From the IMG/VR virus record IMGVR_UViG_3300033388_007730, positions 62,001 to 126,000 of that record: a stretch of 64,000 nucleotides of DNA; one strand, given 5' to 3'. Under the pieces are notes generated by a model that saw only the letters and a list, made by a program, of their open reading frames with translations, did not search any database and had not been told where the DNA came from. Below, piece after piece: positions 23,421 through 57,899 of this stretch. The translations under genes and the position numbers were made by a program. Each line of letters begins with the position of its first letter. The stretch's first letter is position 1.

Positions 23421-23635
23421 GTAGAAGAGATTACAGTGAGTATGTTTCAAGAATGAGTTATGGAGATCTTGTTCTACATATAGAAGAAATAGGAAAAGAA
23501 AAATTCAGAGGTCCTTTATCGGATAATTATTTATTGATGTCAGCTCTATGTTGTGAGAAGTACAAAAGAGATCAAGTAGAAAAAGAATTTTTGAGTAGAA
23601 AAAAGATATCAAGATTTAAGTTGATGGAATTATGA
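23417..23635 (+). CDS. hypothetical protein with C-terminal tag
   Basis: ends KKISRFKLMEL. Confidence 0.55.
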   Translation: MSRRDYSEYVSRMSYGDLVLHIEEIGKEKFRGPLSDNYLLMSALCCEKYKRDQVEKEFLSRKKISRFKLMEL

Positions 23636-24345
23636 AATCATATGAAGAATTAATTGGAAAGCACGAAGGAAAAAATGCCTTTATTTTAGGAGCTGGACCA
23701 TCTCTTTGGTTCAATATGCATAATCCATTATTTACATATCTTCCTTTATACGGAATTACTATTACTGTTAATTCTGCTGTGCTAGCAGATCCAGGATTTG
23801 ATTATTGGATTTCTAATGACGCACTTTGCAAGAGATGGAGCTGGTGGAAATTAGTTAAGAAGAATAAAGGAAAAAAAGTTGTAAGAGATAGCTGGTTAAA
23901 ATATAAAGATGAGATAAAAGATTTTTATATTTTTAAGCAAAGACCTACTTCTGAAGATATTATAAATCCAGAGGATAAAGGTTTAGCATATTGTAGTTCC
24001 GTTCCTTCAGCAATAGATCTTGCTCTTCAAATGGGTTGTAAGAATGTATTTGTACTTGGATTAGATCATGCGAAGTGGAAAAGAAAACACCACTTTTGGG
24101 AATATATGAAAAGGAAACCTACTGCTGTTTATCCTGCCCAGGGTCCATTTTCTCAGCAGAAAAAAGTTTTTCCAATCAATGAAAAAGCATTTTCGGCATT
24201 AAAGAAATTTGCAGATCATAAGAAAGCAAAAATATACAATATCAGTTATATGATAGAAGATAAAGAACTAAAATGGATGACTAAGGTTGATAATTTTGAA
24301 ATTATTTATTTGAATCAGATAGAAAAAATATTGGGAAAAGTATAA
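23632..24345 (+). CDS. Maf/MptE-like (DUF115) sialyltransferase-fold protein
   Basis: AFILGAGPSL, ITVN, SSVPSAIDLALQMGCKNVFVLGLDH. Confidence 0.7.
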   Translation: MKSYEELIGKHEGKNAFILGAGPSLWFNMHNPLFTYLPLYGITITVNSAVLADPGFDYWISNDALCKRWSWWKLVKKNKGKKVVRDSWLKYKDEIKDFYIFKQRPTSEDIINPEDKGLAYCSSVPSAIDLALQMGCKNVFVLGLDHAKWKRKHHFWEYMKRKPTAVYPAQGPFSQQKKVFPINEKAFSALKKFADHKKAKIYNISYMIEDKELKWMTKVDNFEIIYLNQIEKILGKV

Positions 24346-24542
24346 TGAAAGCAAGAGAATTAATACAAGAATTGGTAAAATTGATTGATAGGGATGGGGA
24401 TAGTGATGTAGAAATAACTCCAAGAATGGACAAATGGGTTTATGGGAGTAGACCTATTGAAAGTATTGGTGGAGATGGAGAAGGTGACAGAGGCGATGGA
24501 TGTATTTATATTCAATGTGAGATATATGAGGAAGAGAAATGA
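24345..24542 (+). CDS. hypothetical protein
   Basis: translationally coupled small ORF. Confidence 0.5.
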   Translation: MKARELIQELVKLIDRDGDSDVEITPRMDKWVYGSRPIESIGGDGEGDRGDGCIYIQCEIYEEEK

Positions 24543-24772
24543 AGTTCTTAAAAAAATTATTCAAAAGAGAGAAAAAGTATAAGCTCACTCTAACAGAAGA
24601 TGATATATTTTATACTGTAGTCCCTGCTGTTTATACGTGGTATGAAGAAGTAAGAAAGGACGGAGAGGAAAATGATTATAATGACGACAATAAAGAAATT
24701 CTTGAAAAAACAATGAAAAACTGTGTAGAAGTAATTGTTAAAATTAGGAAAGCAAGGGGGATAATTAAGTGA
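24539..24772 (+). CDS. hypothetical protein
   Basis: translationally coupled small ORF. Confidence 0.5.
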   Translation: MKFLKKLFKREKKYKLTLTEDDIFYTVVPAVYTWYEEVRKDGEENDYNDDNKEILEKTMKNCVEVIVKIRKARGIIK

Positions 24773-25152
24773 ATAAAGAAAAGTTGAAAAAAGAACTCGT
24801 TGAAATATCTGAGATGGAAGATAATTGGGATGGTTATGAAGCACCGTCTTTCACAAAAGAAATAATTGATAAAATTGATATTATCATTGATTGTTTAGAT
24901 GATAAATATCCAACGCCAGATCTTGTTCCTAGCCCTATTGGAATACAACTTGAATGGGATAGATCAAAGAAGAAAGGTGAGCTTAATTATTTAGAGATAA
25001 GTGTAGATGATGATAAGATATTATATATACAAGGCTTTGGAATGGGTATACAAGGCTTTGGAATGGGTATGCATGATTTTGATGATAAGAATATATCTGA
25101 TCTTAGTGAGATAAATGAGTTGTTAGAATCTTTTTATGGAGAAGAAAAATGA
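24769..25152 (+). CDS. hypothetical protein (NWDGY motif)
   Basis: EDNWDGYEAP...GIQLEW; 21-bp tandem duplication at 25027-25068. Confidence 0.55.
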   Translation: MNKEKLKKELVEISEMEDNWDGYEAPSFTKEIIDKIDIIIDCLDDKYPTPDLVPSPIGIQLEWDRSKKKGELNYLEISVDDDKILYIQGFGMGIQGFGMGMHDFDDKNISDLSEINELLESFYGEEK

Positions 25153-25556
25153 AGATGGTAGAAAAAATTTGGGGAAGTGAAAAATGGATTGTGAATAATG
25201 ATCTTTATTGTGGTAAAGTACTCACACTAAAAAAGATGTTCAGATGCAGTATCCATCATCACAAAAAGAAGACAGAAACCTTCTATGTCACAAAAGGAGA
25301 AGTATTATTAGAGGTTGATGATAATGCTTATATACTCTTGCCAGGAGATGCTATCGATGTATTTATAGGACAAGATCATAGATTTACAGGATTAGAAAAA
25401 AGTGAGATAATGGAATTTTCTACTCACCATGAAGACGAAGATAGTTATAGAAAGGTAGATAGTGGAGAGGTTAGAACTAACGATATAGATGATGTTAATA
25501 AAAAAATACATTTAACTAGAGATAATAATGAAGCAATAAGGAGAAATGATGATTGA
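25149..25556 (+). CDS. cupin (sugar-isomerase-like)
   Basis: VEKIWGSEKW, SIHHHKKKTETFYV, HRFTG, EFST. Confidence 0.8.
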   Translation: MKMVEKIWGSEKWIVNNDLYCGKVLTLKKMFRCSIHHHKKKTETFYVTKGEVLLEVDDNAYILLPGDAIDVFIGQDHRFTGLEKSEIMEFSTHHEDEDSYRKVDSGEVRTNDIDDVNKKIHLTRDNNEAIRRNDD

Positions 25557-25890
25557 TAGAAGAGAATTGTTTGAGAGCATGACTAGGGTTGATGTTCATC
25601 AGAGAAGTATCGATGATGTTATTAATACATTGGAAGAGTTGAAAAAAGAGTGTAAAAGTGATGAAGAATTGAAAAAATATTATAATACAAGATTATTATT
25701 TGAGTTGGATGGAGAGGATAGAATATGTTTGGAACTCTATGGGTATAGGATGGAAAGTGATGAAGAGTTTGAAACAAGAAAAAAAGAAAGGGAATCATAC
25801 GAAAGAGAGTATTCAGAAGAACTATTGGAAAAAGATAAACAAGATTATGCCAGGTTAATAGAAAAATATCCAGATGGTATTCCAAAATAA
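25546..25890 (+). CDS. hypothetical protein
   Basis: translationally coupled ORF. Confidence 0.55.
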   Translation: MMIDRRELFESMTRVDVHQRSIDDVINTLEELKKECKSDEELKKYYNTRLLFELDGEDRICLELYGYRMESDEEFETRKKERESYEREYSEELLEKDKQDYARLIEKYPDGIPK

Positions 25891-26606
25891 TGAAACAGTT
25901 CAAAGATATTCATAAAGATAAGATGTGTTTTATCTATGGAGCAGGAACTTCATTACATTTCATAGATTGTGAGCCTCTTAAAAAATATGTCACTATTGCT
26001 GTTAATTCTGGAGTAGTAAAAGCAAAATGGTGTGATTACTTCCTTTCAGATGATATAGGAATGAAGAATTGGAGCTATTATACTGAATTACTACCAACAT
26101 TAAATTGCAAAAAATTATTGTATAAAGATAAGTTAAAACATCATCACTCTCATTTAGATGATGTTTTTTTATATGAGCATACCTGGTGGTTCTCGCCAGA
26201 AGGTAGAAAATATAATTATGATGGATTGAAGTTGAATAAGACTGGTCCTATTATCGGTGCTAGAACTTCAATGGCTTCTGCTGTTCATTTCGCATATATT
26301 TTTGGTTGTAATCCGATAATATTATTAGGTAATGATTGTTGTTTCAAAGATGGCAAGAGGTATTTCTGGCAGTATAAGGGAGAGGATGCACCTCACAGAA
26401 CTAATAACCAGAGATTTAACAGTAGAACTCAAAACTTCGGATTTAGCCAAAGTGATTTTGTGGAGTACTGGACTTGCTTTGAGCAGATGAACAGAGATGT
26501 TATTGGGAAAGAGGTTGAGATTATAGATGCTTCTGAAAGTGTATTAGATTGTTTTCCAAAAATGAAAATTAATGAGGTATTAGAGAAATATGGCAGATTG
26601 GTATGA
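25890..26606 (+). CDS. Maf/MptE-like (DUF115) sialyltransferase-fold protein, paralog of 23632
   Basis: CFIYGAGTSL, TIAVN, TSMASAVHFAYIFGCNPIILLGND. Confidence 0.7.
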   Translation: MKQFKDIHKDKMCFIYGAGTSLHFIDCEPLKKYVTIAVNSGVVKAKWCDYFLSDDIGMKNWSYYTELLPTLNCKKLLYKDKLKHHHSHLDDVFLYEHTWWFSPEGRKYNYDGLKLNKTGPIIGARTSMASAVHFAYIFGCNPIILLGNDCCFKDGKRYFWQYKGEDAPHRTNNQRFNSRTQNFGFSQSDFVEYWTCFEQMNRDVIGKEVEIIDASESVLDCFPKMKINEVLEKYGRLV

Positions 26607-27878: not shown

Positions 27879-28652
27879 ATGATAGATAATAAAAAAATAT
27901 TATGTGTTATTACGGCAAGGGGTGGTTCTAAGGGAATTCCAATGAAAAATGTCAGACATTTAATGAATGAACCTTTGTTTATGTGGTCTGTATATGCTTC
28001 TCTTCAATCTCAGTATATTGATAAAACAGTAATCTCATCTAACTGTCCAGAAGTAGAAAAGATTTATGCAAATCGGATGTGCAAGGACTGTGGGTGGGAT
28101 TCTGTTAATATTTCCAATCTTACATTTATAAAAAGACCTGAAGATATATCGGGTGATTTGTCAAAAAATGAAGAAGCACTGATACACGCTTATAATTGGA
28201 TGAAGGAAATAGATGAAGAATATGATGTAATAATAAATCTTCAACCCACTTCTCCTTGTAGAATTGGTGATCTCTTAGATAGATGTATTGAGGAATGTCA
28301 TAGAGGGGGGTATGATAGTTTGCTCACAGCAAAAAAAGATACCCCCTTTATATGGCAAAAAAAAGATGGAAAATGGGAATATACAGTAGATAAAAATGAT
28401 TGTTGTAATAGGAAAATGAGGCAGGAATTCGACGAGTCTGAGATGTTATTACATGATTGTGGCAATATTTATATTACTAATACAGATATTTTGCTTGACA
28501 GAGACTGTAGAATAGGTTATAATCCATGTGTATTTGAAGTTGATGGAATAAACTCTATTCAAATAGATAAAGAATTTGATTTTCAGATTATTGAGAAGTT
28601 GGCAGAATCAATGGGATTAGAAACTTTAGTAGATTATTGGACAGAGTTATGA
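27879..28652 (+). CDS. neuA: acylneuraminate (nonulosonate) cytidylyltransferase
   Basis: ITARGGSKGIPMKN, LQPTSPCR, GNIY, IDKEFDF. Confidence 0.88.
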   Translation: MIDNKKILCVITARGGSKGIPMKNVRHLMNEPLFMWSVYASLQSQYIDKTVISSNCPEVEKIYANRMCKDCGWDSVNISNLTFIKRPEDISGDLSKNEEALIHAYNWMKEIDEEYDVIINLQPTSPCRIGDLLDRCIEECHRGGYDSLLTAKKDTPFIWQKKDGKWEYTVDKNDCCNRKMRQEFDESEMLLHDCGNIYITNTDILLDRDCRIGYNPCVFEVDGINSIQIDKEFDFQIIEKLAESMGLETLVDYWTEL

Positions 28653-29715: not shown

Positions 29716-30228
29716 ATGAGTAATGATAATTATTATGAGACAGATAAATTCATATTTTTTTATGGTTCGTTTTATTCACAATGGGCTATAAGAGATATGG
29801 AGATAGACGATATTACATTCAATTGTTGTGAGCAGTATATGATGGTTTGTAAGGCTCGTCTTTTTAATGATATAGAAGCTGTGGCAGATATTATGCATCA
29901 TGCCAATCCTAGAAAACAAAAAGAAGTAGGAAGGAAAGTAAAGAATTTTAATAAAGATAAATGGGAAGAAATAGCAAGAGATGTTGTTTATAAAGCTAAC
30001 TATGCTAAATTTACTCAGCATGAAGATTTGAAGGAAAAGTTGTTAGCAACTGGTGACAAAATTATTGTAGAAGCTAGTCCTTGGGATCATATTTGGGGAA
30101 TAGGCATGAGAGTATCTGATCCAGGAATTACAAATCCTAAAAATTGGGAAGGGACTAATTGGCTAGGAGAAGCTATCATGGCGGTAAGAAAAGTTTTAAG
30201 GGAAGAAATAGAAGATGCTGAAAGATAA
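29716..30228 (+). CDS. NADAR (YbiA/RibX) family protein
   Basis: FYSQW, EQYMM..KA.LF, KFTQH, VEASPWDHIWGIG, GTNWLG. Confidence 0.9.
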   Translation: MSNDNYYETDKFIFFYGSFYSQWAIRDMEIDDITFNCCEQYMMVCKARLFNDIEAVADIMHHANPRKQKEVGRKVKNFNKDKWEEIARDVVYKANYAKFTQHEDLKEKLLATGDKIIVEASPWDHIWGIGMRVSDPGITNPKNWEGTNWLGEAIMAVRKVLREEIEDAER

Positions 30229-30306
30229 CTAAAAGAAACTTGTAAAGATTCAAATTATACTTTTGGAAAGTAATGGTGAATAGCAAGAAGAAATAAGGAG
30301 TTAATT

Positions 30307-30597
30307 ATGGCACATAAAGGTTATGAGATATTTATTACTGATCCAAACGCTGCTACTGAAATGACGTGTAAAATTTGTCATACAAATTGCGATGTAATTC
30401 GTGGGACTTATGGTCCAACTAGTTTTGGTGGAGCTATGGTCAAGCATAGTCGTTTACATGATTATTTTAAATGTCCTAATTGTGAAGAAGAGTGGCATAA
30501 GCAAGCTTTAGCACTTTATTTAGATATTGAGAAATGTAATAGTCCATCTCTCAGAGAAATAATGCAAAATGATTTAAGTAATATGATAGGTGAATAG
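30307..30597 (+). CDS. Cys/His-rich hypothetical protein
   Basis: SD AAGGAG; CKICHTNC, HDYFKCPNC. Confidence 0.6.
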   Translation: MAHKGYEIFITDPNAATEMTCKICHTNCDVIRGTYGPTSFGGAMVKHSRLHDYFKCPNCEEEWHKQALALYLDIEKCNSPSLREIMQNDLSNMIGE

Positions 30598-30608
30598 GTA
30601 ATATTTTT

Positions 30609-30824
30609 ATGTCAAAAAAAAATAAAGCAAAGAAGCTAAGAAATAGGATTAAGAAGAGAAGAGAAAAATCTTTGATAGATGTTGATTTGGAAGATGCTCC
30701 TGATCCAGAGAGAAGAAGAGCATATTTAAAAGCATCTATGGAGAGATTAGATGAATATGCTATAAATATTAAAAGAGATAGAGACGACCCATTATGGGAG
30801 TCTTCTTCTCAAGAGGTGTATTAA
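30609..30824 (+). CDS. hypothetical protein
   Basis: 71-aa ORF with basic N-terminus. Confidence 0.5.
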   Translation: MSKKNKAKKLRNRIKKRREKSLIDVDLEDAPDPERRRAYLKASMERLDEYAINIKRDRDDPLWESSSQEVY

Positions 30825-31192
30825 TGAGAATATTAATACTAGAAGATGATAGAGAGAGAAGCAAATGGTTTTTAGAGACATTTGCTGATTGTGATTTAAC
30901 TTTCACAAAGAGAGTTCCCCAGGCTCTATCTTGTATTAGAGGGTCTAGCTATGATATTATATTTTTGGACAGAGATTTGGGTCAGCTAAAAGAGAATGGT
31001 GAAGAAGTAGTCTGGGGAATGAAAGAGGAAAAATTAGCTTCTGATTCAACAGTGGTAATTCATTCTGTTAATACTTGTGGTCAAAGTGCCATGAAAAGGT
31101 ATTTAGAGAGTTATCATTCTGATGTTCATGTTATTCCTTTTCCAAAATTAATGAAAATGAAGAGAGATGATTTTAAATTAATCGGGTCTTAG
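30824..31192 (+). CDS. stand-alone receiver domain (cyclic-phosphate-processing receiver type)
   Basis: MRILILEDD, IFLDRDLG, VIHSVN. Confidence 0.7.
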   Translation: MRILILEDDRERSKWFLETFADCDLTFTKRVPQALSCIRGSSYDIIFLDRDLGQLKENGEEVVWGMKEEKLASDSTVVIHSVNTCGQSAMKRYLESYHSDVHVIPFPKLMKMKRDDFKLIGS

Positions 31193-32020
31193 TTTTCTTC
31201 TCTGTTCCATTTCCATTTCATCACATTGATAAGGTTTAAATTTGAGTGCTAAGGAAACAGCTTTTATGTCTCTTATCATTTTAGATAGACCCTGGAATTC
31301 TAATGATGCGGCAGAATCCGTATGGCGGAAAAGGCGGTCATCTATAACATGTCGCTCAAAATATCTTGCTCCTAAAGCGTAGGCAACTGGTTCTGTGGCA
31401 ATGCCATAACCGTGATTACTATATCCTACTTTTGGGAAGTTCTTTGACAAATTCATAATTTCTTTTAAGTATAACTTATCAAATGGAACTGGGTATCCAC
31501 TGGTACAATGATAAATTACTATTCTGTTTCTTTTGTGTGGTGATAATTTTCTGTATAAATCTTTTCTTTCAGATTCGTTAGTCATGCCAGTTGATATATG
31601 AACTTCTCCATCGTAGTCATTGATTAAAAGATCAAGTATATCTTCATCATCGTTACATGCAGATGGTATTTTAATAAATTTAGGATTTAGATTTATTACT
31701 TCTTTGGCACTTGTCATATCCCAAACAGATGTTGAATATTCTATATTTATTGACTCGCAATATTCTTTTAATTCTTTATGTCGCTCAATGGACATTTCCA
31801 GGTTATTTCTATGATCTAAATATGTTCTTCCATATGAAAACATCTCATTTGGATGAGGCTCATGCCATAATTCTTTTCTCACACACTCTTTGGGATTTCT
31901 TTTTTGAGTTTTTAATACATCTGCTCCAGCTAATTTGGCTAATTTAGCTAATTTTTTTGCTCTACTAATAGATCCGATATGAGTGCCACCTATTTCTGCA
32001 ATTACGGTAAAATTTTTCAT
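31178..32020 (-). CDS. neuB: N-acetylneuraminate(-9-phosphate) synthase family, no SAF domain
   Basis: IAEIGGTH, KTQKR, IKIPSA, ISTGM, YHCTSGYP, GYSNHG, ERH; SD AAGGAG. Confidence 0.88.
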   Translation of the reverse strand: MKNFTVIAEIGGTHIGSISRAKKLAKLAKLAGADVLKTQKRNPKECVRKELWHEPHPNEMFSYGRTYLDHRNNLEMSIERHKELKEYCESINIEYSTSVWDMTSAKEVINLNPKFIKIPSACNDDEDILDLLINDYDGEVHISTGMTNESERKDLYRKLSPHKRNRIVIYHCTSGYPVPFDKLYLKEIMNLSKNFPKVGYSNHGYGIATEPVAYALGARYFERHVIDDRLFRHTDSAASLEFQGLSKMIRDIKAVSLALKFKPYQCDEMEMEQRRKLRPD

Positions 32021-32078: not shown

Positions 32079-32107
32079 TTGCAAGTGAAAAAGAATTGTG
32101 GTATAAT
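32079..32107 (+). promoter_or_regulatory. sigma70-like promoter, probably leaderless
   Basis: TTGCAA-17 nt-TATAAT, 6 nt before ATG 32114. Confidence 0.65.
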
Positions 32108-32113
32108 GCGGTT

Positions 32114-32650
32114 ATGATAGATTATGAGAAAATTAAAGTACTGTCTATCGATGTCGATGGGACTCTTACAGATGGTCTTTATCAGATAGATAAAGATGGA
32201 AATGTTGTTAAGAGTTTTTATACAAGAGATTTTTGTGGAATTCAAATGTTACTTGAGGCTGGTATTAGAGTTGTAATAATAACTCAATCTCATGATACGG
32301 TTATTAGAGCACAAGTTAATAGAATAGCTTCTCATTCAAACATATGGAGAGATGCTTTGCTCGCAGAAGAAGTATATTTTGATAATAGAATGATAATTAA
32401 AATTGCTAGTAATAATAAAAAAGAATTTGTAGAGAATTATTTATCGCATTATAATTTGACTCTTGAGAATTTGGCTCATATCGGTGATGCAGAAAATGAT
32501 ATGGAACTTCTTGAGGTAGCAGGATATACAGCTTGTCCAGCAGATGCTATAGAAGATATCACAGATGTTAATTACAGGTGTGAGAATAAAGGTGGGAGAG
32601 GTGCTGTTCACGAATTTTGCAGACATTTATTAGCGAAAAGAGGAAAATAA
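32114..32650 (+). CDS. KdsC-like HAD phosphatase (KDO-8-P or nonulosonate-9-P)
   Basis: IDVDGTLTDG, HIGDAEND, ACPADA, GGRGAVHEF. Confidence 0.85.
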   Translation: MIDYEKIKVLSIDVDGTLTDGLYQIDKDGNVVKSFYTRDFCGIQMLLEAGIRVVIITQSHDTVIRAQVNRIASHSNIWRDALLAEEVYFDNRMIIKIASNNKKEFVENYLSHYNLTLENLAHIGDAENDMELLEVAGYTACPADAIEDITDVNYRCENKGGRGAVHEFCRHLLAKRGK

Positions 32651-33024
32651 TGGTAGAATCAGAATATAATATATTAAGACCTAATACAGGTAATGATACA
32701 CAAGCTATTTATAAGAATCATGTTTTTGTGGCTATTACTGATTATGGGTTAGTATTGTTGTTAAGAGAAATAAGAGTAAAATATGGAGAAGTAAATCCAG
32801 GGTGGATTTGGATTAAGATGAAAGAAAATGATTGTTTAACAATTGGATCTGGAGAAAAAGAATATAATTCTTTTGATCTCGCTATTAATAAATTAGTGAA
32901 TGATCCTTATCTTACTGTATATGACTTTAATTCTTATAATAAAATGATACAAGCTTGGGCAGAAGGAAAATTAAAGTATGAAGACAATATAAAAACTATT
33001 TATGAAGGCAAAATTGAAAGGTAA
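32650..33024 (+). CDS. hypothetical protein
   Basis: TAATG overlap start. Confidence 0.5.
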   Translation: MVESEYNILRPNTGNDTQAIYKNHVFVAITDYGLVLLLREIRVKYGEVNPGWIWIKMKENDCLTIGSGEKEYNSFDLAINKLVNDPYLTVYDFNSYNKMIQAWAEGKLKYEDNIKTIYEGKIER

Positions 33025-33028
33025 TCAA

Positions 33029-33430
33029 ATGGCAGAGTATCATGTAGTAGAGACAGAATTTCAAGATCAGGAGTGTTTATTAGATGCTCTTAAGGAAATG
33101 GGTTATACTCCTACAGTCCATGAAACTACTAAGCAGCTTGAAGGGTATCAAGGGGATCAAAGACAGCAAAAAGCACACATCATCATCCCAAGAAGACAGG
33201 TTGGTGGTTCAAGCAATGATGTTGGATTTGAGAAAGTTAAGGGGAAGTACATATGTCATGCATCTGAATATGATAGAGCTTGGAGAACAGGTAAGAAGAT
33301 AAATAATCTGAAAAAGGGTTATGCAGAAAAAGTGATTATGAAAACTGTTAGAAAGCATTCTAGGTATTCTTTTAAGTCAAGAAAAGTTGATGAAGATGGG
33401 AATATTAAAATAAAAGTGAGAAGATTATAA
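33029..33430 (+). CDS. DUF1257 (Ycf35-like) protein
   Basis: CLLDALKEMG, LEGYQGDQR..AHIII, SNDVGF. Confidence 0.75.
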   Translation: MAEYHVVETEFQDQECLLDALKEMGYTPTVHETTKQLEGYQGDQRQQKAHIIIPRRQVGGSSNDVGFEKVKGKYICHASEYDRAWRTGKKINNLKKGYAEKVIMKTVRKHSRYSFKSRKVDEDGNIKIKVRRL

Positions 33431-33447
33431 AAAAAGATATTTTTTTC

Positions 33448-33476
33448 TTGACATTGGAGAGGTAATGTGTTATAAT
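33448..33476 (+). promoter_or_regulatory. consensus sigma70 promoter
   Basis: TTGACA-17 nt-TATAAT with TG extension. Confidence 0.8.
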
Positions 33477-33537
33477 GCTATTTATCGTTAAGGTAGTAAA
33501 TAATTGTTAATTTGTTAGAAGAATTGAGAGGTGTATT

Positions 33538-33948
33538 ATTTCAGAATTTCATGTTGTAGAAACCGAATTTATCGACGAAGAATGCCTTCTTGGGGCATTG
33601 AAAGAAATGGGCTTTAATGCAGAGGTTCATGAGGAACAGGTTAAGCTCAATGGTTACAGTGGTAGAGGGGCACAACCAAAAGCACATATTGTAGTTCGTA
33701 AGAACCAATTCAATGGTTATGGCGATGCTGGCTTTGAGAGGGTTAAAGAGGGTGGATTTAGACTTCATGTAGATGATTATGATCATGGTCGTAGAAGCGA
33801 CAAGCTTAAGATGGCTAAGATCAAGCAAGTATATTCTGCGAATATCATTGAAAAGACTGTTAGAAAAACGAGTAAGTTTACTCTTCTTTCCCGAAGGAAA
33901 AATAAGAACGGTGAAATCAAAATCCGTGTAAGACGTATGGGGAATTAA
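33538..33948 (+). CDS. DUF1257 paralog, apparent ATT start
   Basis: ATT-SEFHVVETEFIDEECLLGALKEMG aligns with MAEYHVVETEFQDQECLLDALKEMG of 33029; SD GAGGTG. Confidence 0.7.
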   Translation: MSEFHVVETEFIDEECLLGALKEMGFNAEVHEEQVKLNGYSGRGAQPKAHIVVRKNQFNGYGDAGFERVKEGGFRLHVDDYDHGRRSDKLKMAKIKQVYSANIIEKTVRKTSKFTLLSRRKNKNGEIKIRVRRMGN

Positions 33949-33953
33949 TTTAT

Positions 33954-34595
33954 ATGGGTAGATTAAAAGGTAAAAAGAAATCTAAGGCTCGTAATAAAAA
34001 GAGATTAGATTCTCAGAAGAAGAGTGCGAGTTATAGGAAGAAAATTCTTGGTAAGATTTTAAAGTGGGCTGATCCTGCTCTTTCTGAGAAGTGTATAGCT
34101 ATAGAAAAAGATGAAGATATTAAAAGTCTCATAAAAGATATGGGTAGAGTTCTCTTTTTTTCTAAAAACGGTGTAGGATTAGCAGCTTCTCAAATAGGAG
34201 TTGCTAAGAGAGTTATTGCTACTATGTTGGACAAGAAGATAACGATTTTTATTAATCCAGAGATATTGATCTACAATGGAGATGTGATTAAGAGTAGGGA
34301 AATGTGTCTTTCTTATCCAGGATTTGAAGCTGTAGTAGATAGGAACGACACTATCACTATGAGATATGAAGACGAGAGCAGAGTATCTTATACTAAAGAG
34401 TTTAAAGGATTTAGAGCTATAGTTTTACAACATGAAGTTGATCATCTGAGAGAAGGATTATGCGAGATAGGAAAAGAGTGGAAAAGACAAAACACTCCTC
34501 CTCCAGTTGAAGAAGAGGTAGAAGTAGAACCAGAAGAATATGATGAACCTGTGAAAGTGGCTTCTGTGAGTAGTGAGGTTAATAAAGAGGAATGA
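33954..34595 (+). CDS. def: peptide deformylase
   Basis: GVGLAASQIG, EMCLSYPG, QHEVDHL. Confidence 0.88.
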   Translation: MGRLKGKKKSKARNKKRLDSQKKSASYRKKILGKILKWADPALSEKCIAIEKDEDIKSLIKDMGRVLFFSKNGVGLAASQIGVAKRVIATMLDKKITIFINPEILIYNGDVIKSREMCLSYPGFEAVVDRNDTITMRYEDESRVSYTKEFKGFRAIVLQHEVDHLREGLCEIGKEWKRQNTPPPVEEEVEVEPEEYDEPVKVASVSSEVNKEE

Positions 34596-34723: not shown

Positions 34724-34729
34724 ACTCTT

Positions 34730-52682: not shown

Positions 52683-53423
52683 ATGAGTCTTATATCAGAA
52701 CAAGAGATGAAAGATCTAAAAAAATCTAATACAGTTGTTATATGGGGCTGTGGCTCTTCTCTTAACGATTTTCCAGATTGGAGTTTTGATAATTTGAAAA
52801 AATTTGACAGTATTTCTTTCAATTGGTTCTGTTTCTCTTGTCACTCAATTACTTATTATTTAGTTAGGGAACAGGCTAATTTAGAAAAAAGAACTAACGG
52901 AGAGGAAAACATAGATAACTTTTATGATATAATGAATTATTCTTATATAAATAGTTGTTTAGTCGTGCATGACCTGTCATTACATTCTCCACATGCATAT
53001 GATTATTCTTCAGAAAAAAATATAGCAAAATTTAATAGCAAGTATGTAGTGGTAAAAGATACTAAGTTGAAAGATAATGATCCAGGTGTTAAATTGTGGA
53101 GAGATAAAAGTATTTTTAAAAGTGGGATATATCATGGAAAAACAACTTTGACAAATGCTTTGCATCTTGCTGTGTGGCTGGGATATAAGAAAATAATTTT
53201 TGCGGGAGTTGATTTATATGATTCAAGATACTTTTGGTTGAATAACAATGATACGAGATATTCTGTTTCTGATAAGAAGAAAGACAGAACTGCTAAACAT
53301 GCCACAGTTAGTGCTGTAATGAAATTAGTAAAAGATGTAAAGAAGTATTATCCAAAAATAAAGATGTATACCTATAATCCTAAGTCATTATTAAAAAATG
53401 TTATTCCGGTGTGGAAGAAATGA
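52683..53423 (+). CDS. Maf/sialyltransferase-fold protein
   Basis: VVIWGCGSSL, ISFN, ALHLAVWLGYKKIIFAGVD. Confidence 0.65.
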   Translation: MSLISEQEMKDLKKSNTVVIWGCGSSLNDFPDWSFDNLKKFDSISFNWFCFSCHSITYYLVREQANLEKRTNGEENIDNFYDIMNYSYINSCLVVHDLSLHSPHAYDYSSEKNIAKFNSKYVVVKDTKLKDNDPGVKLWRDKSIFKSGIYHGKTTLTNALHLAVWLGYKKIIFAGVDLYDSRYFWLNNNDTRYSVSDKKKDRTAKHATVSAVMKLVKDVKKYYPKIKMYTYNPKSLLKNVIPVWKK

Positions 53424-54292
53424 AAAGCATATTATGTGTAACTGACAAGAAGGGTTGGTGTTTGTATAATATTATGAACATCTTAAAGGGATATATGCCT
53501 CAATATAACATAGATGTAATATCTTTGAAAGATAAATTCAAACCTGATAAATATGATTTGGTCTATTATACTCACTTTGCTCTGTATAAAAAAAGATCAT
53601 ATAGCGGTAAAAAAATAGCAACTGTAACAAGTCATAAATGTCTCAATGATATGAAAAAAACTCTCAAGATACTGAGAGAGTTTGATGCTGTATCTGTCAA
53701 TAGTATGATATTGCATGATATATTCAAAGATCATATCAAAAATCTATCTTACACTCCAAGCGGAGTTGATACAAAAAATTTTAGATTTAAGGATAAAACT
53801 AGAAATGATAAAATAGTTTTAGGTTGGGTTGGTAACAGAGATAGAAGTGTTAAAAATTATGACACTATATTCAAACCTCTGAAGAAGGTTATTCGACATG
53901 TAGAGTTTAAGGAAATAGCTACAAGAAAAGGAGATACTCATAAAAAGTTTCTTAACGCTAAGGGAATGGCTGAGTTCTACCATCAGTTAGACTTTTTTAT
54001 CATAACAAGTGATGCTGAGGGGACACCAAATCCTGGCTTGGAAGCTATGTCTTGTGGTGTTCCAATCATATCTACTAGAGTGGGCAATATGGTGGAGATA
54101 GTGGAGGATAAAGTTGACGGATTCTTTTGTGACAATGATATAAGGTCATTCGCTAAGAGGATAGAGAGAGAAAAAAGTATCTCTCATAATGATTATTACC
54201 TAATGAGCAGTAATATCAGAATTAAGATGGTTGAGTGGGATTGGTCGATAATATATAAGAAGTATGAAGATTTTTTTGGAAGTGTAATTTAG
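53420..54292 (+). CDS. GT4 glycosyltransferase
   Basis: SGVDT, GWVGN, EGTPNPGLEAMSCGVPIISTRVG. Confidence 0.85.
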   Translation: MKSILCVTDKKGWCLYNIMNILKGYMPQYNIDVISLKDKFKPDKYDLVYYTHFALYKKRSYSGKKIATVTSHKCLNDMKKTLKILREFDAVSVNSMILHDIFKDHIKNLSYTPSGVDTKNFRFKDKTRNDKIVLGWVGNRDRSVKNYDTIFKPLKKVIRHVEFKEIATRKGDTHKKFLNAKGMAEFYHQLDFFIITSDAEGTPNPGLEAMSCGVPIISTRVGNMVEIVEDKVDGFFCDNDIRSFAKRIEREKSISHNDYYLMSSNIRIKMVEWDWSIIYKKYEDFFGSVI

Positions 54293-54789
54293 TGAGAATT
54301 AAGATACCAGCGATAGGGATCCCACATTATTGGTGGAATAAGAGGGCGTGTAAATATGCTAAGAAATATCCTAATTTAGTTAAGATGGCTGTGTCAGATT
54401 TAGTATTTGGATGTAATCCTCATATTAACTTTTTAAAATATATAGACGATCTTTCAAAAAATGTTAAGGAATCAGAATATTGGGAATACCAGAAGAGGAA
54501 TAAAAAAGAAGAAGTAATTTGGAATAAAATAAAAAAATATAAACAAACTTATAGAAGCATTAAAGATAATGGATTCAATGCTTTAGGTGATAAATATAAT
54601 TCTTCTATTATTGTGACAGATGATGGGTGTAGATTAGATGGGTCTCATAGAGTAGCTATATTGTTTCATCTGGGTATTTTAGAAGTTGATGTTAATGTGG
54701 TAGTTTATGAAAAAGTTTTTTCAAAAAAAGAATCTGAAAAGATTAGAAAAGAAAATTTAGAATATCGAAAAGAGACATATGGATTGTGA
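54292..54789 (+). CDS. ParB/Srx-like protein
   Basis: YRSIKDNGF...IIV...LDGSHRVAIL..LG. Confidence 0.6.
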   Translation: MRIKIPAIGIPHYWWNKRACKYAKKYPNLVKMAVSDLVFGCNPHINFLKYIDDLSKNVKESEYWEYQKRNKKEEVIWNKIKKYKQTYRSIKDNGFNALGDKYNSSIIVTDDGCRLDGSHRVAILFHLGILEVDVNVVVYEKVFSKKESEKIRKENLEYRKETYGL

Positions 54790-55528
54790 AATAGAAAAGA
54801 AAATATTGATATCTGTTTTAATGACATCGAGAAATAGGTTTAATATGTTGTATAAAAATTGCAAGCAGATGTTTTCTTTAGCTGCTAATTCAGAAAATAT
54901 AGAATTAATTTTATATATTGATAGAGATGACTATGAGACTATTTCTATTTATGAAAAAATGAGAAATGAGAATAGTAATGTTAGGGCTATAATAGGAAAA
55001 AAATTATCGCATTATGGTCATGCTTATAACATATTATGTAAAGAAGCAGGTGGAGATATATATTTTTTTATAGCAGATGATTGTTTGATTAGCAATGAAA
55101 ATTGGGACGAAATTGTTTTGAATGAATTTAATAAAGTAAATGATAAAATATTATTAGTTTACGGGGATGATGGTAATCAAGGTAAAAAAACTGCGACAAT
55201 TGGTTTTGTTCACAAAAACTGGGTAGAAACGATAGGATATTTATTTCCTTTAGATATGATGGTTAAGGTTGGGGATAGCTGGTTAACAAAAGTTGCTCGA
55301 ATTATAGGAAGAGATGTTTTTATAGATGACTTAAAAATTAAACATCTTATAGAAGAAACAAAAAGAAATCCTGTTAAAGATGAGGAGTGGAATAAGAATA
55401 GAGATATTCGTAAAAAAATTAAAAAGTTATTTAGAGAAAGTAAAAAAGTAAAAAATTTGATAAATATGGATGCTATTAAATTGGAACAATTTATAGAAAA
55501 AAATAAAAAAGGAAGCAAAAATGAGTAA
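54779..55528 (+). CDS. GT2-like glycosyltransferase
   Basis: ISVLMTSRNR, YIDRDD, IADD, VYGDD. Confidence 0.7.
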   Translation: MDCEIEKKILISVLMTSRNRFNMLYKNCKQMFSLAANSENIELILYIDRDDYETISIYEKMRNENSNVRAIIGKKLSHYGHAYNILCKEAGGDIYFFIADDCLISNENWDEIVLNEFNKVNDKILLVYGDDGNQGKKTATIGFVHKNWVETIGYLFPLDMMVKVGDSWLTKVARIIGRDVFIDDLKIKHLIEETKRNPVKDEEWNKNRDIRKKIKKLFRESKKVKNLINMDAIKLEQFIEKNKKGSKNE

Positions 55529-56282
55529 ACCATTATTTAGTTTAATAGCTCCTGCTATTAGACCTAAATTTTATGAGAGAGTATATAATTCCATTTCTTT
55601 TGATAACAATATTCCATTTGAAATTATTTTTGTTGGACATAAAAAGCCAGATAAAAAAATGCCAGATAATTTTCATTATATATTCACAAAAGTTAAACCA
55701 TCTCAAAGTCTAGAAATAGCTGCTAGGAATGCTAGTGGGGATTATTTAATACCTGTATCAGATGATCTGCTTTTTTCTGATGGGTTTTTAAAAAACACTC
55801 TTAAATATATAGAAGAGAAAGGAAAGGATGTATTTATTACTTATCGTTTGGCAATTGATGGAGAAATGAAGGATGACTGGATATATCTTTTGTCAGTTAA
55901 AAAACATAAAAAATCACCGATAAGATATACCCGATTAGGAGCATCGGGGGCTTTTGATAGAAAAATATGGCATGAACTTGGTGGAGTAGATAAAAGATTT
56001 TATTATGCTTTCACTGATAGTGATATACAGTTTAGATATAGGGAGACGAGAGACTTTTTCATAACTCCAGATTGTTGGATTAATGAAAGCAGAGATGCCC
56101 ATAAAGGGAGCGCGAGGGCTAGTAAGATTATTAATATTCAGCATGAAAGAAGTTTATTTAATAAATTATGGGTTAAAGATGATAAGTTTGTGGGGAAAAG
56201 ATTGGAAAAAGTTATTCCTTTTGATGATAAAGATATTTTGATAAAGAATCAAGGAAGGAATTCTAAAGGTGGGTGGGACTGA
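55521..56282 (+). CDS. GT2-like glycosyltransferase
   Basis: FEIIFVG, ASGDY..VSDD, LGGVDKRF. Confidence 0.7.
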   Translation: MSKPLFSLIAPAIRPKFYERVYNSISFDNNIPFEIIFVGHKKPDKKMPDNFHYIFTKVKPSQSLEIAARNASGDYLIPVSDDLLFSDGFLKNTLKYIEEKGKDVFITYRLAIDGEMKDDWIYLLSVKKHKKSPIRYTRLGASGAFDRKIWHELGGVDKRFYYAFTDSDIQFRYRETRDFFITPDCWINESRDAHKGSARASKIINIQHERSLFNKLWVKDDKFVGKRLEKVIPFDDKDILIKNQGRNSKGGWD

Positions 56283-56283
56283 A

Positions 56284-57192
56284 ATGAAGATTCTTCTTTT
56301 AATCGATAAGCCTAACTGGGCATATCATCATATAGCAAAAGGTTTGATAAAGTATAATAATAGCGGTATAGAATTTGTTTGTCAGCCAATAAAAAAACAA
56401 GATAAGTATATAAAAAAAATATATAAAAAATATGATTTATTTTATGTATTTGGGTACAAGACGTATGGGAAGATTAATTTTTTACCAAAAAATAAAACAA
56501 TGGTTGGAGTTCATTCTTGTAAAGAGTGGGATGATGATAAAACAACACCAACAAATGTGGCCACACCTCAAAAGGATACAATTAAATATCTTAATTCTTT
56601 TTTGAGAGTCGGTGTAGTTTCTCAATATATTTATGATGTGTTAAAAAAATCGGGAGTAAATAATTTATATTATACTCCTAATGGTGTTGATTCTAATTTA
56701 TTTGTTCCACAAAATAAAATTCATAAAGAGTTTACTATAGGATATGCAGGAGTAAAGTCTCATGACTGGTTGAAGGGTATAACGGAGTTTATTATTCCAG
56801 CTTCTAAAAGATCTAAGGTTCAAACTCATTTAGCGCTAAGATTAACGAAATCTCAATTAATGTATGATCAGATGCCTAATTTCTATAATATGTTAGATGC
56901 CTATGTGTGTGCATCTACATCAGAGGGATTTTCATTAAGTGTCCTTGAGGCTGCTTCATGTGGTATTCCCATTATATCCACAAGAGTATCTGGATGTAAG
57001 GAGTTGATAAGACATGGTGAAAATGGTTTTTTTGTCGATAGAAGTGTAGAAGATATTTCTAGAAAAATAGATATCATGAAAGACCTGGAATTTAGAAAAT
57101 TTATGAGTGAGAATATGAGAAAAGATATTGTAGAAAATCATTGTTGGAGTGTTAAAATTGATAAATGGATAGATTTTTTTAAAGGTAAATAA
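56284..57192 (+). CDS. GT4 glycosyltransferase, paralog of 53420
   Basis: PNGVD, EGFSLSVLEAASCGIPIISTRV. Confidence 0.85.
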   Translation: MKILLLIDKPNWAYHHIAKGLIKYNNSGIEFVCQPIKKQDKYIKKIYKKYDLFYVFGYKTYGKINFLPKNKTMVGVHSCKEWDDDKTTPTNVATPQKDTIKYLNSFLRVGVVSQYIYDVLKKSGVNNLYYTPNGVDSNLFVPQNKIHKEFTIGYAGVKSHDWLKGITEFIIPASKRSKVQTHLALRLTKSQLMYDQMPNFYNMLDAYVCASTSEGFSLSVLEAASCGIPIISTRVSGCKELIRHGENGFFVDRSVEDISRKIDIMKDLEFRKFMSENMRKDIVENHCWSVKIDKWIDFFKGK

Positions 57193-57194
57193 TT

Positions 57195-57899
57195 TTGGGA
57201 ATAACACTTAATAAATATAATTGTTGCGATTTCGGGAAAGTTGATAGTATAGGAGTTCTATGCAGAGGAAAATCTCTTGGTAGCATAGGTAAATATAAAG
57301 AGAATTTTAAAAATATTTTTCTTGTTGGACAACATTATAGATCTCTTAAATTAATAGGTGAGCATATAGATGGTAGCAACATAGTAAAAATTTGGGGCAG
57401 TACTTTTAATAAACCTAGCAATGGTTATAAGAAACAATATGCAAAATATAATATAAGAGATATGCAAACATATCTTGATCCAAATTTGAGTGATCGTAAA
57501 GCATATAAGTTTAAAAAGATTACAAAAACAAATCATGGTTTGTTAGAAGTCTTTCCAAAACCTACTGATTTTAATGAAAGAAATAAAAGGTTTATTTTAA
57601 AGAGAGATCACAGAAGAGGAGAGAGACTTCATCATCCAACAATAGGGTTATTTGCTGTGGATATGGCTTGTGCTTACAAGCCTAAGCAGGTGAATATAAT
57701 TGGACTGGATTTTTATTGTGCTTCTGATTTTGTAGAAGAAAAGAGACATATTAGTACAAAGAAGAATTTTTGTAGAGGACCTTCGATGATAGAATATTTT
57801 GTATTACTTTGTAAGGAAGAGCCAGATATTCAATTTAATTTGTATACATGCTGTAGGAAAATTAAATCTAACAGAAATTTAAATATTATAAGAGTATAG
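57195..57899 (+). CDS. sialyltransferase-like (GT29/Maf fold) protein
   Basis: IGVLCRGKSL, PTIGLFA, VNIIGLDFY. Confidence 0.5.
   Translation: MGITLNKYNCCDFGKVDSIGVLCRGKSLGSIGKYKENFKNIFLVGQHYRSLKLIGEHIDGSNIVKIWGSTFNKPSNGYKKQYAKYNIRDMQTYLDPNLSDRKAYKFKKITKTNHGLLEVFPKPTDFNERNKRFILKRDHRRGERLHHPTIGLFAVDMACAYKPKQVNIIGLDFYCASDFVEEKRHISTKKNFCRGPSMIEYFVLLCKEEPDIQFNLYTCCRKIKSNRNLNIIRV

Follow-up and report, generated by a model that had tools for sequence, protein, structure and literature searches.

We asked whether a locus in the IMG/VR record IMGVR_UViG_3300033388_007730 could equip its carrier to make two different CMP-activated acidic keto-sugars (sialic-acid-like) by itself. The window, which is the whole stretch of DNA analyzed here, comprises 64,000 nucleotides (positions 62,001 to 126,000 of the 219-kb record), and the record belongs to a roughly half-megabase marine phage-like element that is classified as viral by IMG/VR. 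An initial annotation, made from the sequence alone, had proposed two nonulosonic-acid pathways accompanied by four Maf/sialyltransferase-fold genes. As described below, the results confirm the gene content and support most of this interpretation, and suggest that the element can probably build its own acidic glycan from host central metabolites.

Gene content of the locus

We first determined whether the nine genes named in the initial annotation are present. All nine are intact ORFs, and together with their neighbors they are arranged as follows.

23632-24345 (+), a putative CMP-ulosonate transferase of 237 aa, a mini-Maf of the DUF115/PF01973 type consisting of the catalytic domain only
25149-25556 (+), a small cupin of the PMI type II/lyxose-isomerase type
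25890-26606 (+), a mini-Maf paralog
27879-28652 (+), NeuA1, a CMP-nonulosonate synthetase-type cytidylyltransferase
31178-32020 (-), NeuB1, a SAF-less NeuB-family ulosonate(-phosphate) synthase of 280 aa
32114-32650 (+), a cap-less (C0) HAD phosphatase of the KdsC/KDN-9-P phosphatase family
36512-38449 (+), a GT4-GT2 fused glycosyltransferase
38449-39129 (+), NeuA2, a cytidylyltransferase ending two bases before the start of the next gene
39132-40598 (+), a fusion of NeuB2, a SAF domain and a D-lyxose/D-mannose-isomerase-like cupin
40606-41493 (+), an unknown protein of 295 aa
41495-52635 (+), a block of glycosyltransferases and methyltransferases: GT2 at 41495, 44670 and 51991; GT4 at 43733 and 50595; a TylF-like methyltransferase at 42172; a methyltransferase at 49322; a cupin at 45411; and several unknowns
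52683-53423 (+), an MptE-like/Maf-superfamily putative CMP-sugar transferase
53411-57192 (+), GT4 at 53411 and 56269, and GT2 at 54779 and 55521
57195-57899 (+), a putative CMP-ulosonate transferase with a predicted GT42 (CstII/Cst-I) fold
57901-64000 (+), a continuation of the island: methyltransferases at 57901, 60704 and 61297; GT2-like genes at 58319 and 58980; and a GDP-mannose 4,6-dehydratase with an intein from 62495, which runs off the window

The glycosyltransferase and methyltransferase assignments rest on Pfam searches. NeuB1 is the only large minus-strand gene in the 219-kb record. The record holds exactly two NeuB and two CTP_transf_3 genes; the two NeuBs share 23% identity and the two NeuAs 24%, so they are not recent duplicates. 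In addition to the genes named in the initial annotation, a fifth MptE-like gene lies about 11 kb beyond the window (G000:136834-137655), and the window holds three PMI/lyxose-isomerase-type cupins (25149, 45411 and the fusion). The 295-aa protein had no Pfam or NCBIfam hit, and an atlas search gave no lead; however, it also follows the fusion in the closest relative (71% identity to L006:11475-12401, L006 being one of the marine virus-like contigs discussed below).

The two candidate CMP-ulosonic-acid modules

We next investigated the enzymes of the first set (Module 1), to which the initial annotation had attributed the synthase, phosphatase and CMP-transferase logic of a 9-phosphate route. 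NeuA1 matched CTP_transf_3 at 46.7 bits (cut-off 22.6); its closest PDB entries were mouse CMP-Neu5Ac synthetase 1QWJ (67.7 bits) and 9T4Z, labelled 'PpNeuA' (53.5 bits), and its P-loop reads ARGGSKG. NeuB1 matched NeuB at 191.7 bits and has no SAF domain; its closest PDB entry was PseI 8H2C (85.8 bits), and the conserved His203/His224, Glu9 and Glu222, which include putative metal ligands and catalytic residues, are invariant across the family. The HAD (32036/32114-32650) best matched KdsC TIGR01670 (84 bits) and the KDN-9-P phosphatase model NF058599 (76 bits), both below their cut-offs, and its PDB matches included 3N1U, several KdsC entries and BT1713 3E81. The DVDGT and GDxxND motifs are present in the HAD, and a promoter-like TTGCAA-N17-TATAAT lies at 32079-32107.

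Consistent with a shared pathway, Module 1 derives from a compact operon, Maf-NeuA-NeuB-HAD, of related IMG/VR contigs of up to 494 kb. In 15 loci with NeuB1 orthologs (47-71% identity), the HAD was present in 13, where it lies next to the NeuB1 ortholog, a NeuA1-type gene in 14 and a mini-Maf in 15. Eight of these loci show a co-directional operon with one to three Maf copies, most with overlapping stops and starts, and three further large contigs show the same set. The results support a synthase-phosphatase-cytidylyltransferase-transferase route through a phosphorylated intermediate, in which NeuB1 would condense PEP with a sugar phosphate, the HAD would remove the phosphate, NeuA1 would make the CMP-sugar and the two mini-Maf enzymes (23632 and 25890) would transfer it.

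The most likely sugar, although inferred, is KDN made from mannose-6-phosphate, perhaps supplied by cupin 25149 (Cupin_2 at 39.4 bits and MannoseP_isomer at 25.1 bits; 30% identical to the cupin end of the fusion), which lies inside the module but is not conserved in the Module 1 operon of relatives. A different product, such as Neu5Ac through ManNAc-6-phosphate (the animal-type route) or an 8-carbon Kdo-like acid, is possible but less likely. NeuB1 scored higher against the NeuB_NnaB model than against the PseI model (155 against 122 bits), the HAD is as close to KdsC as to KDN-9-P phosphatase, and NeuA1 is closest to the mouse CMP-Neu5Ac synthetase. However, the 219 kb, which is only about 44% complete so that absences are provisional, holds no NeuC-type epimerase and no DegT aminotransferase, and hence no gene for ManNAc or ManNAc-6-P supply, and Kdo-8-P synthases are generally assigned to a different family, KdsA. 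Together with the absence of an NDP-hexose pyrophosphorylase from this incomplete record, this argues against Pse, Leg and de novo Neu5Ac and for a non-amino acid made from central metabolites. No protein reached an NCBIfam equivalog cut-off, so specificities are not assigned.

We then examined the second set (Module 2). NeuA2 matched CTP_transf_3 at 59.7 bits and scored about equally against PseF (36.6 bits) and a KdsB model (33.6 bits). The fusion carries NeuB (150.9 bits), a weak SAF match and Lyx_isomer/Cupin_2, and matched PDB 3G8R at 243 bits, with 7NZO and 2Y0O matching the cupin. In line with the suggestion of the initial annotation that the cupin could isomerize the precursor sugar, the cupin resembles D-lyxose/D-mannose isomerases and keeps conserved His/Glu residues at the positions expected for metal ligands; catalytic and putative metal-binding residues in both domains are invariant in 108 homologs. 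In our favored model, the cupin domain isomerizes a ketose to an aldose, the NeuB-SAF part condenses that aldose with PEP to a free 3-deoxy-2-ulosonic acid, NeuA2 activates the acid, and 52683, 57195 or the paralog outside the window transfers it. The length of this acid is unproven: it could be KDN (C9) or an octulosonic acid (C8), and the term 'nonulosonic' used in the initial annotation is therefore not shown for Module 2.

The genomic context of the fusion in bacteria suggests an alternative. In 55 of 80 bacterial loci, including that of M. gastri, the fusion sits with an NDP-sugar nucleotidyltransferase, a 4,6-dehydratase, a DegT/E1-like enzyme and an ALS/YerE-like ThDP enzyme. The bacterial homologs lack an adjacent NeuA and sit beside a ThDP carboligase, in branched-sugar clusters where a C8 acid would fit, so the product of the fusion need not be CMP-activated or nine carbons long. 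In such a scheme (PMC9306805), the fusion would make a polyhydroxylated alpha-keto acid that a ThDP enzyme decarboxylates and adds to a 4-keto-deoxyhexose, giving an acyl-branched sugar of the gastriose/caryophyllose type. Indeed, the element has a ThDP E1 alpha/beta pair next to a GDP-mannose 4,6-dehydratase just past the window. We nevertheless consider this unlikely. A cytidylyltransferase directly precedes the fusion in the element and in all four marine virus-like contigs examined (L003, L006, L089 and L090); NeuA2 is 53-92% identical to its counterpart in L003, L006 and L090, so it appears to co-evolve with the fusion, and in L089 a GT29-like gene lies directly upstream of the NeuA gene. 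Further, the 219 kb of this incomplete record holds no DegT/E1-like gene, and no ALS-type ThDP enzyme was seen among the ORFs scanned in and just past the island.

Each module alone is common in IMG/VR, so only their co-occurrence, which the initial annotation had considered unusual, is rare: both modules occur together only here and in one 386-kb relative.

Putative transferases and the site of glycosylation

To determine whether the MptE-like proteins could be CMP-sugar transferases, we compared their sequences and predicted folds with those of known proteins. Proteins 23632, 25890 and 52683 matched MptE-like PF01973 at 28.7, 26.2 and 30.9 bits (the last over profile positions 13-167), each below the cut-off of 34.6, although 52 of 61 members of the 23632 family hit PF01973. 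Protein 25890 is 29% identical to 23632 and 41% identical to the MptE-like gene of the 386-kb relative. Alignment of 52683 with the 23632 family using hhalign gave a probability of 96% and E 4e-9, and 52683 also had a weak WaaZ Kdo-transferase hit. The AF2 model of 23632 (pLDDT 96.6) best matched the Maf catalytic domain, with a VIA-align Z of 16.8 to Maf 5MU5 residues 261-514. Protein 57195 had no Pfam match; however, Foldseek searches with its AF2 model (pLDDT 88) returned CstII and Cst-I as top hits at probability 1.0, VIA-align gave Z 12.6 to 9C08, 12.0 to Cst-I and 11.7 to CstII, and the PTxG...IIGLDFY motif is present.

Because the MptE pterin kinase shares the fold, we considered whether these proteins are instead pyrophosphokinases of the pterin (MptE) or thiamine type. 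The Pfam family is named MptE-like, Foldseek ranked M. jannaschii HPPK 8SD5 first for 23632, and VIA-align gave Z 12.8 to HPPK and about 9 to thiamine pyrophosphokinase. However, Maf 5MU5 scored higher and over more residues (193 aligned, against 156 for HPPK), and the 23632 family profile matched CstII over its full length at E 3e-5 but HPPK only over the first 40 residues or so at E 5e-3. Moreover, 57195 is closest to GT42, the mini-Maf family accompanies NeuB/NeuA in 64 of 80 viral loci, and we saw no folate or pterin gene among the scanned ORFs. A pyrophosphokinase role is thus very unlikely.

We next asked where the glycan might be assembled. The 219 kb of this incomplete record holds no Bac_transf, WecA-type transferase, Wzx flippase or polymerase-like protein, and none of 78 island ORFs is a multi-pass membrane protein. 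This favors glycosylation of proteins in the cytoplasm, consistent with Maf-type enzymes being cytoplasmic protein O-glycosyltransferases (10.1101/2020.06.03.131540). Remodeling of the host cell envelope (capsule/LPS-type conversion, or blocking of receptors) is a doubtful alternative; in its favor, temperate phages use glycosyltransferases for serotype conversion (PMC12619734), one relative is flagged as a provirus by IMG/VR, and host enzymes could still supply the missing steps. Overall, we interpret the region, with moderate confidence, as the core of a glycan-biosynthesis island of at least 55 kb, in which about twenty soluble GT2/GT4 enzymes, methyltransferases and NDP-sugar modifiers build the rest of the glycan in the cytoplasm, most likely on proteins of the element itself, although no virion acceptor was identified.

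Nature of the element and comparison with known systems

The viral label of the record rests on IMG/VR. Seven Pfam hallmark models (four for terminase, two for major capsid and one for tail sheath) gave no hit in 8 related records, two of them about complete, and twenty large ORFs gave no structural PHROG hit. It is therefore conceivable, but in our view unlikely, that the record is another kind of giant extrachromosomal element or a mis-binned cellular fragment. IMG/VR and CheckV classify the clade as viral, complete relatives are about 490 kb, and one relative is 488 kb with direct terminal repeats. Further, the record has phage-style features, namely uniform gene orientation, inteins, homing endonucleases and its own replication set of DnaE, DnaB, primase, clamp loader, RecA and UvrD, and structural genes of huge phages may often be too diverged for Pfam.

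Module 1 resembles the KDN pathway of Bacteroides thetaiotaomicron (KDN-9-P synthase BT1714, KDN-9-P phosphatase BT1713 and CMP-KDN synthetase; the initial annotation had invoked KDN synthesis in Bacteroides) and the animal Neu5Ac-9-P route, in using a NeuB-family synthase, a cap-less KdsC-type HAD phosphatase and a CTP_transf_3 cytidylyltransferase; in relatives, the synthase and phosphatase genes are directly coupled. It differs in that NeuB1 lacks the SAF domain, no protein reaches the KDN-specific NCBIfam cut-off, and the genes are carried by a phage-like element and are fused into an operon with mini-Maf transferases. The mini-Mafs share the predicted catalytic-domain fold, PF01973 signatures and NeuA/NeuB linkage with Maf flagellin nonulosonic-acid glycosyltransferases such as Magnetospirillum Maf (PDB 5MU5), but at only about 237 aa they lack the N- and C-terminal domains that make up the rest of the 630-aa or longer flagellin Mafs, and the acceptor therefore cannot be assumed to be flagellin. 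Similarly, 57195 shares the predicted fold (Z 11-12.6 over 184-204 residues) and the GxGxSL-like and IIGLDFY motifs with the GT42 sialyltransferases CstII/Cst-I of Campylobacter jejuni and the P. multocida enzyme (PDB 9C08). However, it has no Pfam PF06002 hit, identity is 12-19%, and its family has no invariant His after the flexible lid, where CstII has its catalytic His188.

The fusion has the same three-domain architecture as the bacterial NeuB-SAF-cupin proteins of acyl-branched 3,6-dideoxyhexose clusters (family of PDB 3G8R; M. gastri, Chromobacterium), with 37-41% identity over the full length and the same invariant residues, but the bacterial genes sit beside a ThDP carboligase and CDP-sugar genes, whereas the copies in the element and in the marine virus-like contigs sit beside a cytidylyltransferase. 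Finally, we found no paper describing CMP-ulosonic acids made by NeuB-family synthases in phages, but virus-encoded glycosylation machineries are known, including giant-virus fibril glycans, the Kdo genes of Cafeteria roenbergensis virus and mycobacteriophage virion glycosylation (PMC12619734 for the last). As in these systems, a virus-borne set of sugar-nucleotide enzymes plus soluble glycosyltransferases would act without a lipid carrier; here, the element has bacterial-type replication genes, and the inferred donors are CMP-ulosonic acids made by NeuB-family synthases.

Gene content and family assignments

To determine whether the island indeed carries two pathways for nonulosonic acids and four genes of the Maf/sialyltransferase fold, as proposed in the initial annotation, we first examined its setting and each of the genes concerned. 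The record of 219,188 bp is rated 44% complete by CheckV, has about 31% G+C with a strong, constant GC skew and carries nearly all of its genes on the + strand. Upstream of the sugar genes lie RecA, a DnaG-type primase, a DnaE split into three consecutive ORFs (4666-9152: PHP plus the N-terminal NTPase part, the rest of the NTPase domain, and fingers plus HhH) and a UvrD interrupted by an intein (16969-19962), and a free-standing LAGLIDADG/HTH ORF at 21736-22749 has two paralogs elsewhere in the record. DnaB, a clamp loader and a tRNA nucleotidyltransferase are found elsewhere in the record. All of the genes named in the initial annotation are intact ORFs:

23632, 25890 and 52683 (starts): sub-threshold MptE-like hits
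27879 and 38449 (starts): CTP_transf_3 cytidylyltransferases, NeuA1 and NeuA2
31178-32020, minus strand: NeuB1, a 280-aa NeuB domain without SAF
32114-32650: cap-less HAD with best matches to KdsC and the Bacteroides KDN-9-P phosphatase model
39132-40598: NeuB2, a fusion of NeuB, SAF and a cupin that matches D-lyxose isomerase
57195 (start): no MptE-like hit

The two NeuBs are 23% identical and the two NeuAs 24% identical, and they therefore represent two distinct gene sets and not a duplication. The record contains exactly two NeuB genes and two CTP_transf_3 genes, together with three small cupins of the PMI/lyxose-isomerase type, and a fifth MptE-like gene lies just outside the window.

We next asked how firmly these proteins belong to their families. 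NeuB1 and NeuB2 score 191.7 and 150.9 bits against the NeuB model PF03102 (cut-off 22.1). In the NeuB1 family E9, H203, E222 and H224 are invariant in 31 sequences, and in the fusion H196, E197, E219 and H221 are at least 97% conserved in 108 sequences (the roles of these residues are taken from N. meningitidis NeuB as summarized in PMC8208679). NeuB1 ends at residue 280 without a SAF domain, and SAF-less NeuBs are known from environmental bacteria, whereas the SAF domain of the fusion scores 19.7 bits, below the Pfam cut-off of 21, although its alignment to NmNeuB runs to residue 347 of 349. However, neither synthase reaches the equivalog cut-offs for N-acetylneuraminate synthase or pseudaminic acid synthase (TIGR03569 and TIGR03586): NeuB1 scores 154.9 against 399.65 and 122.1 against 340.25, and NeuB2 scores 148.2 and 129.1. 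Similarly, the HAD contains the DVDGT and GDAENDM motifs and, at 178 aa from the ATG at 32114, has the cap-less size of the C0 HAD (YrbI) family, but remains below the cut-offs of TIGR01670 (84.1 against 106.95), KdsC NF007019 (83 against 208) and KDN-9-PPhBT (75.9 against 180). The two cytidylyltransferases score 46.7 and 59.7 bits against PF02348 (cut-off 22.6), with PDB matches to CMP-sialic acid synthetases and to 9T4Z, labeled 'PpNeuA'.

Two predicted CMP-ulosonate modules

The first module comprises the Maf-like 23632 and 25890, NeuA1, NeuB1 and the HAD. NeuB1 is the largest minus-strand gene of the record and is divergent from the HAD gene. A sigma-70-like TTGCAA-N17-TATAAT site at 32079-32107 lies in the spacer between them and ends 7 bases before the HAD ATG, which would give a nearly leaderless transcript. 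The HAD resembles KdsC enzymes, the KdsC-like domain of mouse CMP-Neu5Ac synthetase and BT1713. Between the sugar genes, at 29716-31192 and 33002-35554, lie a NADAR domain protein, a cREC_REC receiver-like protein, two DUF1257 paralogs, a peptide deformylase and a radical-SAM enzyme, all of which are syntenic in a 386-kb relative.

The decisive evidence for this module is comparative. A profile of NeuB1 relatives found 169 IMG/VR contigs, and 15 loci, on contigs of up to 494 kb, have orthologs at 47-71% identity. Within 8 kb of NeuB, the HAD is present in 13 of these loci, a NeuA1-type gene in 14 and a member of the 23632 family in all 15. In eight loci the genes form a compact co-directional operon, Maf(1-3 copies)-NeuA-NeuB-HAD, in most of which the NeuA/NeuB and NeuB/HAD genes overlap, whereas in the nearer relatives of the window NeuB has been inverted. 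Three further contigs of 216-386 kb show the same set beside UvrD, DUF1257, deformylase and radical-SAM genes, as in the window. Interestingly, a second type of SAF-less NeuB, 34-38% identical to NeuB1, occurs in 65 smaller viral contigs, none of which has the HAD phosphatase, whereas a NeuA2-type cytidylyltransferase is present in 50 of 65 and a mini-Maf in 49 of 65.

By analogy with KDN-9-P and Neu5Ac-9-P synthesis, a synthase translationally coupled to a KdsC-type phosphatase is the signature of a route through a phosphorylated ulosonate. The 219 kb contains no DegT aminotransferase, no NeuC-type epimerase and no NDP-hexose pyrophosphorylase, although these absences are provisional because the record is incomplete, and a PMI-type cupin lies inside the module. 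Therefore, KDN from mannose-6-phosphate is the most economical reading, but it is an inference. No protein reaches an equivalog cut-off.

In the second module, NeuA2 ends two bases before the fusion gene starts. The NeuB part of the fusion is most similar to PDB 3G8R (243 bits), and the C-terminal 150 residues or so are most similar to the D-lyxose/D-mannose isomerases 7NZO (E 2.9e-7) and 2Y0O. The Lyx_isomer model (PF07385) scores 26.1 bits against a cut-off of 20.8, albeit over profile positions 83-110 only. In the 108 homologs the cupin residues H406, E410, E411, H445 and H462, inferred to be metal ligands, are at least 97% conserved, as are the NeuB catalytic and metal residues, and both domains are therefore under selection. 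The architecture is not unique, as more than 5,000 proteins share it. In four marine, virus-like contigs a cytidylyltransferase directly precedes the fusion, and in one of them a GT29-like gene lies directly upstream of that cytidylyltransferase. NeuA2 is 53-92% identical to three of these cytidylyltransferases. The unknown protein at 40606 yielded only weak, inconsistent leads in a protein-atlas search (ParB, methyltransferase), and its atlas model has low confidence, so no function is assigned.

Interestingly, the fusion also occurs in 236 GTDB genomes of many phyla, and its bacterial surroundings suggest a different use. In 55 of 80 loci it sits between a DegT/E1-like enzyme and an ALS/YerE-like ThDP enzyme, next to an NDP-hexose 4,6-dehydratase and a nucleotidyltransferase, and C-methyltransferase, NUDIX, rSAM-SPASM or HAD_2 genes often accompany it. 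This is the gene set for acyl-branched 3,6-dideoxyhexoses, in which ThDP enzymes use long polyhydroxylated alpha-keto acids as donors (PMC9306805), and it suggests that the family, including PDB 3G8R, makes the long alpha-keto-acid donor for acyl-branched sugars. The locus is found, for example, in Chromobacterium piscinae and in M. gastri, whose 'gastriose' carries a C7 branch, which is what decarboxylation of a 3-deoxy-octulosonate would give. We therefore conclude that the fusion makes a free 3-deoxy-2-ulosonic acid from a ketose and PEP and that in this element the acid appears to be CMP-activated, although the product is inferred and could have eight or nine carbons. NeuA2 scores about equally against PseF and KdsB models, and its P-loop appears KdsB-like.

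Putative transferases and candidate acceptors

Because the MptE-like family name would also be compatible with a pterin kinase, we next investigated whether the small proteins beside NeuA and NeuB are more likely to be CMP-sugar transferases. The hits of 23632, 25890 and 52683 to PF01973 (DUF115), at 28.7, 26.2 and 30.9 bits, are below the gathering score of 34.6, 57195 has no hit, and the out-of-window paralog reaches 34.1-36.3 bits. For 23632, a search of 1.84 billion representatives found only 135 relatives. Of 61 aligned members, 52 hit PF01973 at E up to 1e-3 and one hit CST-I. The family profile hits CstII at E 3e-5 over its full length, aligning GxGPSL, the N31-equivalent Asn, the S132-equivalent Ser and the G-x-D of GIDFY. 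In contrast, it hits the MptE kinase 8SD5 only at positions 5-42, with E 5e-3, and Maf at E 0.07. The AlphaFold model of 23632 (pLDDT 96.6) matches the Maf catalytic domain (5MU5 residues 261-514, rmsd 3.5) better than the kinase.

Structural matches of the AlphaFold model of 23632 (structure; Z; aligned residues)
Maf catalytic domain, 5MU5; 16.8; 193
MptE HPPK; 12.8; 156
CstII / Cst-I; 11-11.7; 181-196
GT29 sialyltransferases; 8-9; 166-182

For 57195, a 27-sequence alignment gave a model with pLDDT 88, whose best matches are GT42 sialyltransferases (Z 11.3-12.6), ahead of Maf (10.4) and HPPK (9.1). A scan of IMG/VR for close relatives of 52683 found none, but 52683 and the out-of-window paralog align to the 23632 family with hhalign probabilities of 96% and 98%, and all five proteins share the GxGxSL and A-x-x-LA...G-x-D motifs. 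These are 'mini' enzymes of 234-273 aa, which align only to the central domain of 5MU5 and lack the N- and C-terminal domains that flank the core in flagellin Mafs (total length about 600 aa or more). Together with the presence of the family beside NeuA/NeuB in 64 of 80 viral loci, the results make CMP-ulosonate transfer far more likely than pterin phosphorylation.

From 36.5 kb to beyond the window, the island contains at least five GT4 and seven GT2 enzymes, six or more methyltransferases and a GDP-mannose 4,6-dehydratase interrupted by an intein with a LAGLIDADG domain (62495-64000, continuing to G000:126504, where G000 denotes the full record). Just past the window, at G000:126497-137655, lie a ThDP E1 alpha/beta pair, two SDR epimerases, a B12-binding radical-SAM enzyme, an FkbM methyltransferase, a cytidylyltransferase-like/APS-kinase fusion and the fifth MptE-like gene, which together hint at branched, C-methylated and possibly sulfated sugars. 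No Bac_transf or WecA-type priming transferase and no Wzx flippase was found in the 219 kb of this incomplete record, and none of 78 island ORFs has more than one hydrophobic segment. This is consistent with cytoplasmic glycosylation of soluble acceptors, as with flagellin Mafs and virus-encoded systems. DNA hypermodification by the glycosyltransferases appears unlikely, given about twenty glycosyltransferases and the CMP-ulosonate logic, but is not excluded. The acceptor is inferred: upstream of the window, at G000:3354-44758, a run of giant ORFs of 1059-2006 aa, with smaller ones between them, is Ser/Thr-rich (16-24% against a median of 10%) and has no PHROG hit, and the one compared with the phage collection (1941 aa) found no match. 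These ORFs may be structural proteins or glycosylation acceptors, but they are candidates and nothing more.

Distribution and relation to known systems

To determine how unusual the combination is, we compared the distribution of the two modules. Each module alone is frequent in metagenomic viral contigs. However, among the 15 records with the first operon, including two essentially complete genomes, none has an ortholog of the fusion, and both modules occur together only in this record and in a contig of 386,529 bp, with 88-89% identity for both NeuBs. A tblastn search of 50,697 deposited phage records found only 2-3 distant NeuB hits and nothing for 23632 or the 1941-aa ORF, and RecA gave only matches of about 30% identity, indicating that no described relative exists in that collection. 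Within the literature searched, we found no paper on phage-encoded nonulosonic, sialic or other ulosonic acid synthesis, and the paper on the 'moraphage' lineage (PMC12619734) describes smaller genomes of up to 307 kb and does not mention these genes.

We also searched for genes that would confirm the viral nature of the element. No capsid, terminase or sheath gene was found among 20 large ORFs compared with PHROGs or with seven Pfam models for terminase, major capsid or tail sheath in 8 related records, including one of 488,051 bp, which has direct terminal repeats and is rated 100% complete, and one of 494,120 bp. The viral label therefore rests on IMG/VR and CheckV, on the terminal repeats of a relative and on the genome style.

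Overall, the results confirm the gene content proposed in the initial annotation and support its interpretation, with the qualifications that the products and the acceptor are inferred. A further reading, which is not excluded but remains doubtful, is that a clade of roughly 0.5-Mb marine phage-like elements carries an ancestral four-gene operon (mini-Maf, NeuA, SAF-less NeuB and a KdsC-type phosphatase), makes a CMP-nonulosonate through a phosphorylated intermediate and attaches it to its own proteins, and that this sub-lineage added a second CMP-ulosonate module built on a NeuB-isomerase fusion. The particle would then carry a self-made, sialic-acid-like acidic glycan coat with two different ulosonic acids, which would be the first phage counterpart of giant-virus glycan coats and would give the first functional assignment for SAF-less NeuB, for mini-Maf and for the NeuB-SAF-cupin family.

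The comparative data also provide testable functions for three uncharacterized but very abundant protein families: SAF-less NeuB coupled to a phosphatase, 'mini-Maf' transferases of about 240 aa, and the NeuB-SAF-cupin fusion, which appears to feed ThDP-dependent branched-sugar synthesis in bacteria and a cytidylyltransferase in the marine virus-like contigs. The small soluble transferases could also be useful glyco-engineering tools. Sialic-acid-like sugars shape recognition, charge and immune or predator evasion on cell surfaces and are known from animals, bacteria, archaea and some algae, and Kdo genes are known from one giant virus. A phage-borne, self-contained CMP-ulosonate system would extend this chemistry to bacterial viruses and would suggest that huge marine phages cloak their particles or their infected cells. 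The enzyme families themselves are known, and what differs from the known systems is their combination on a giant phage-like element.
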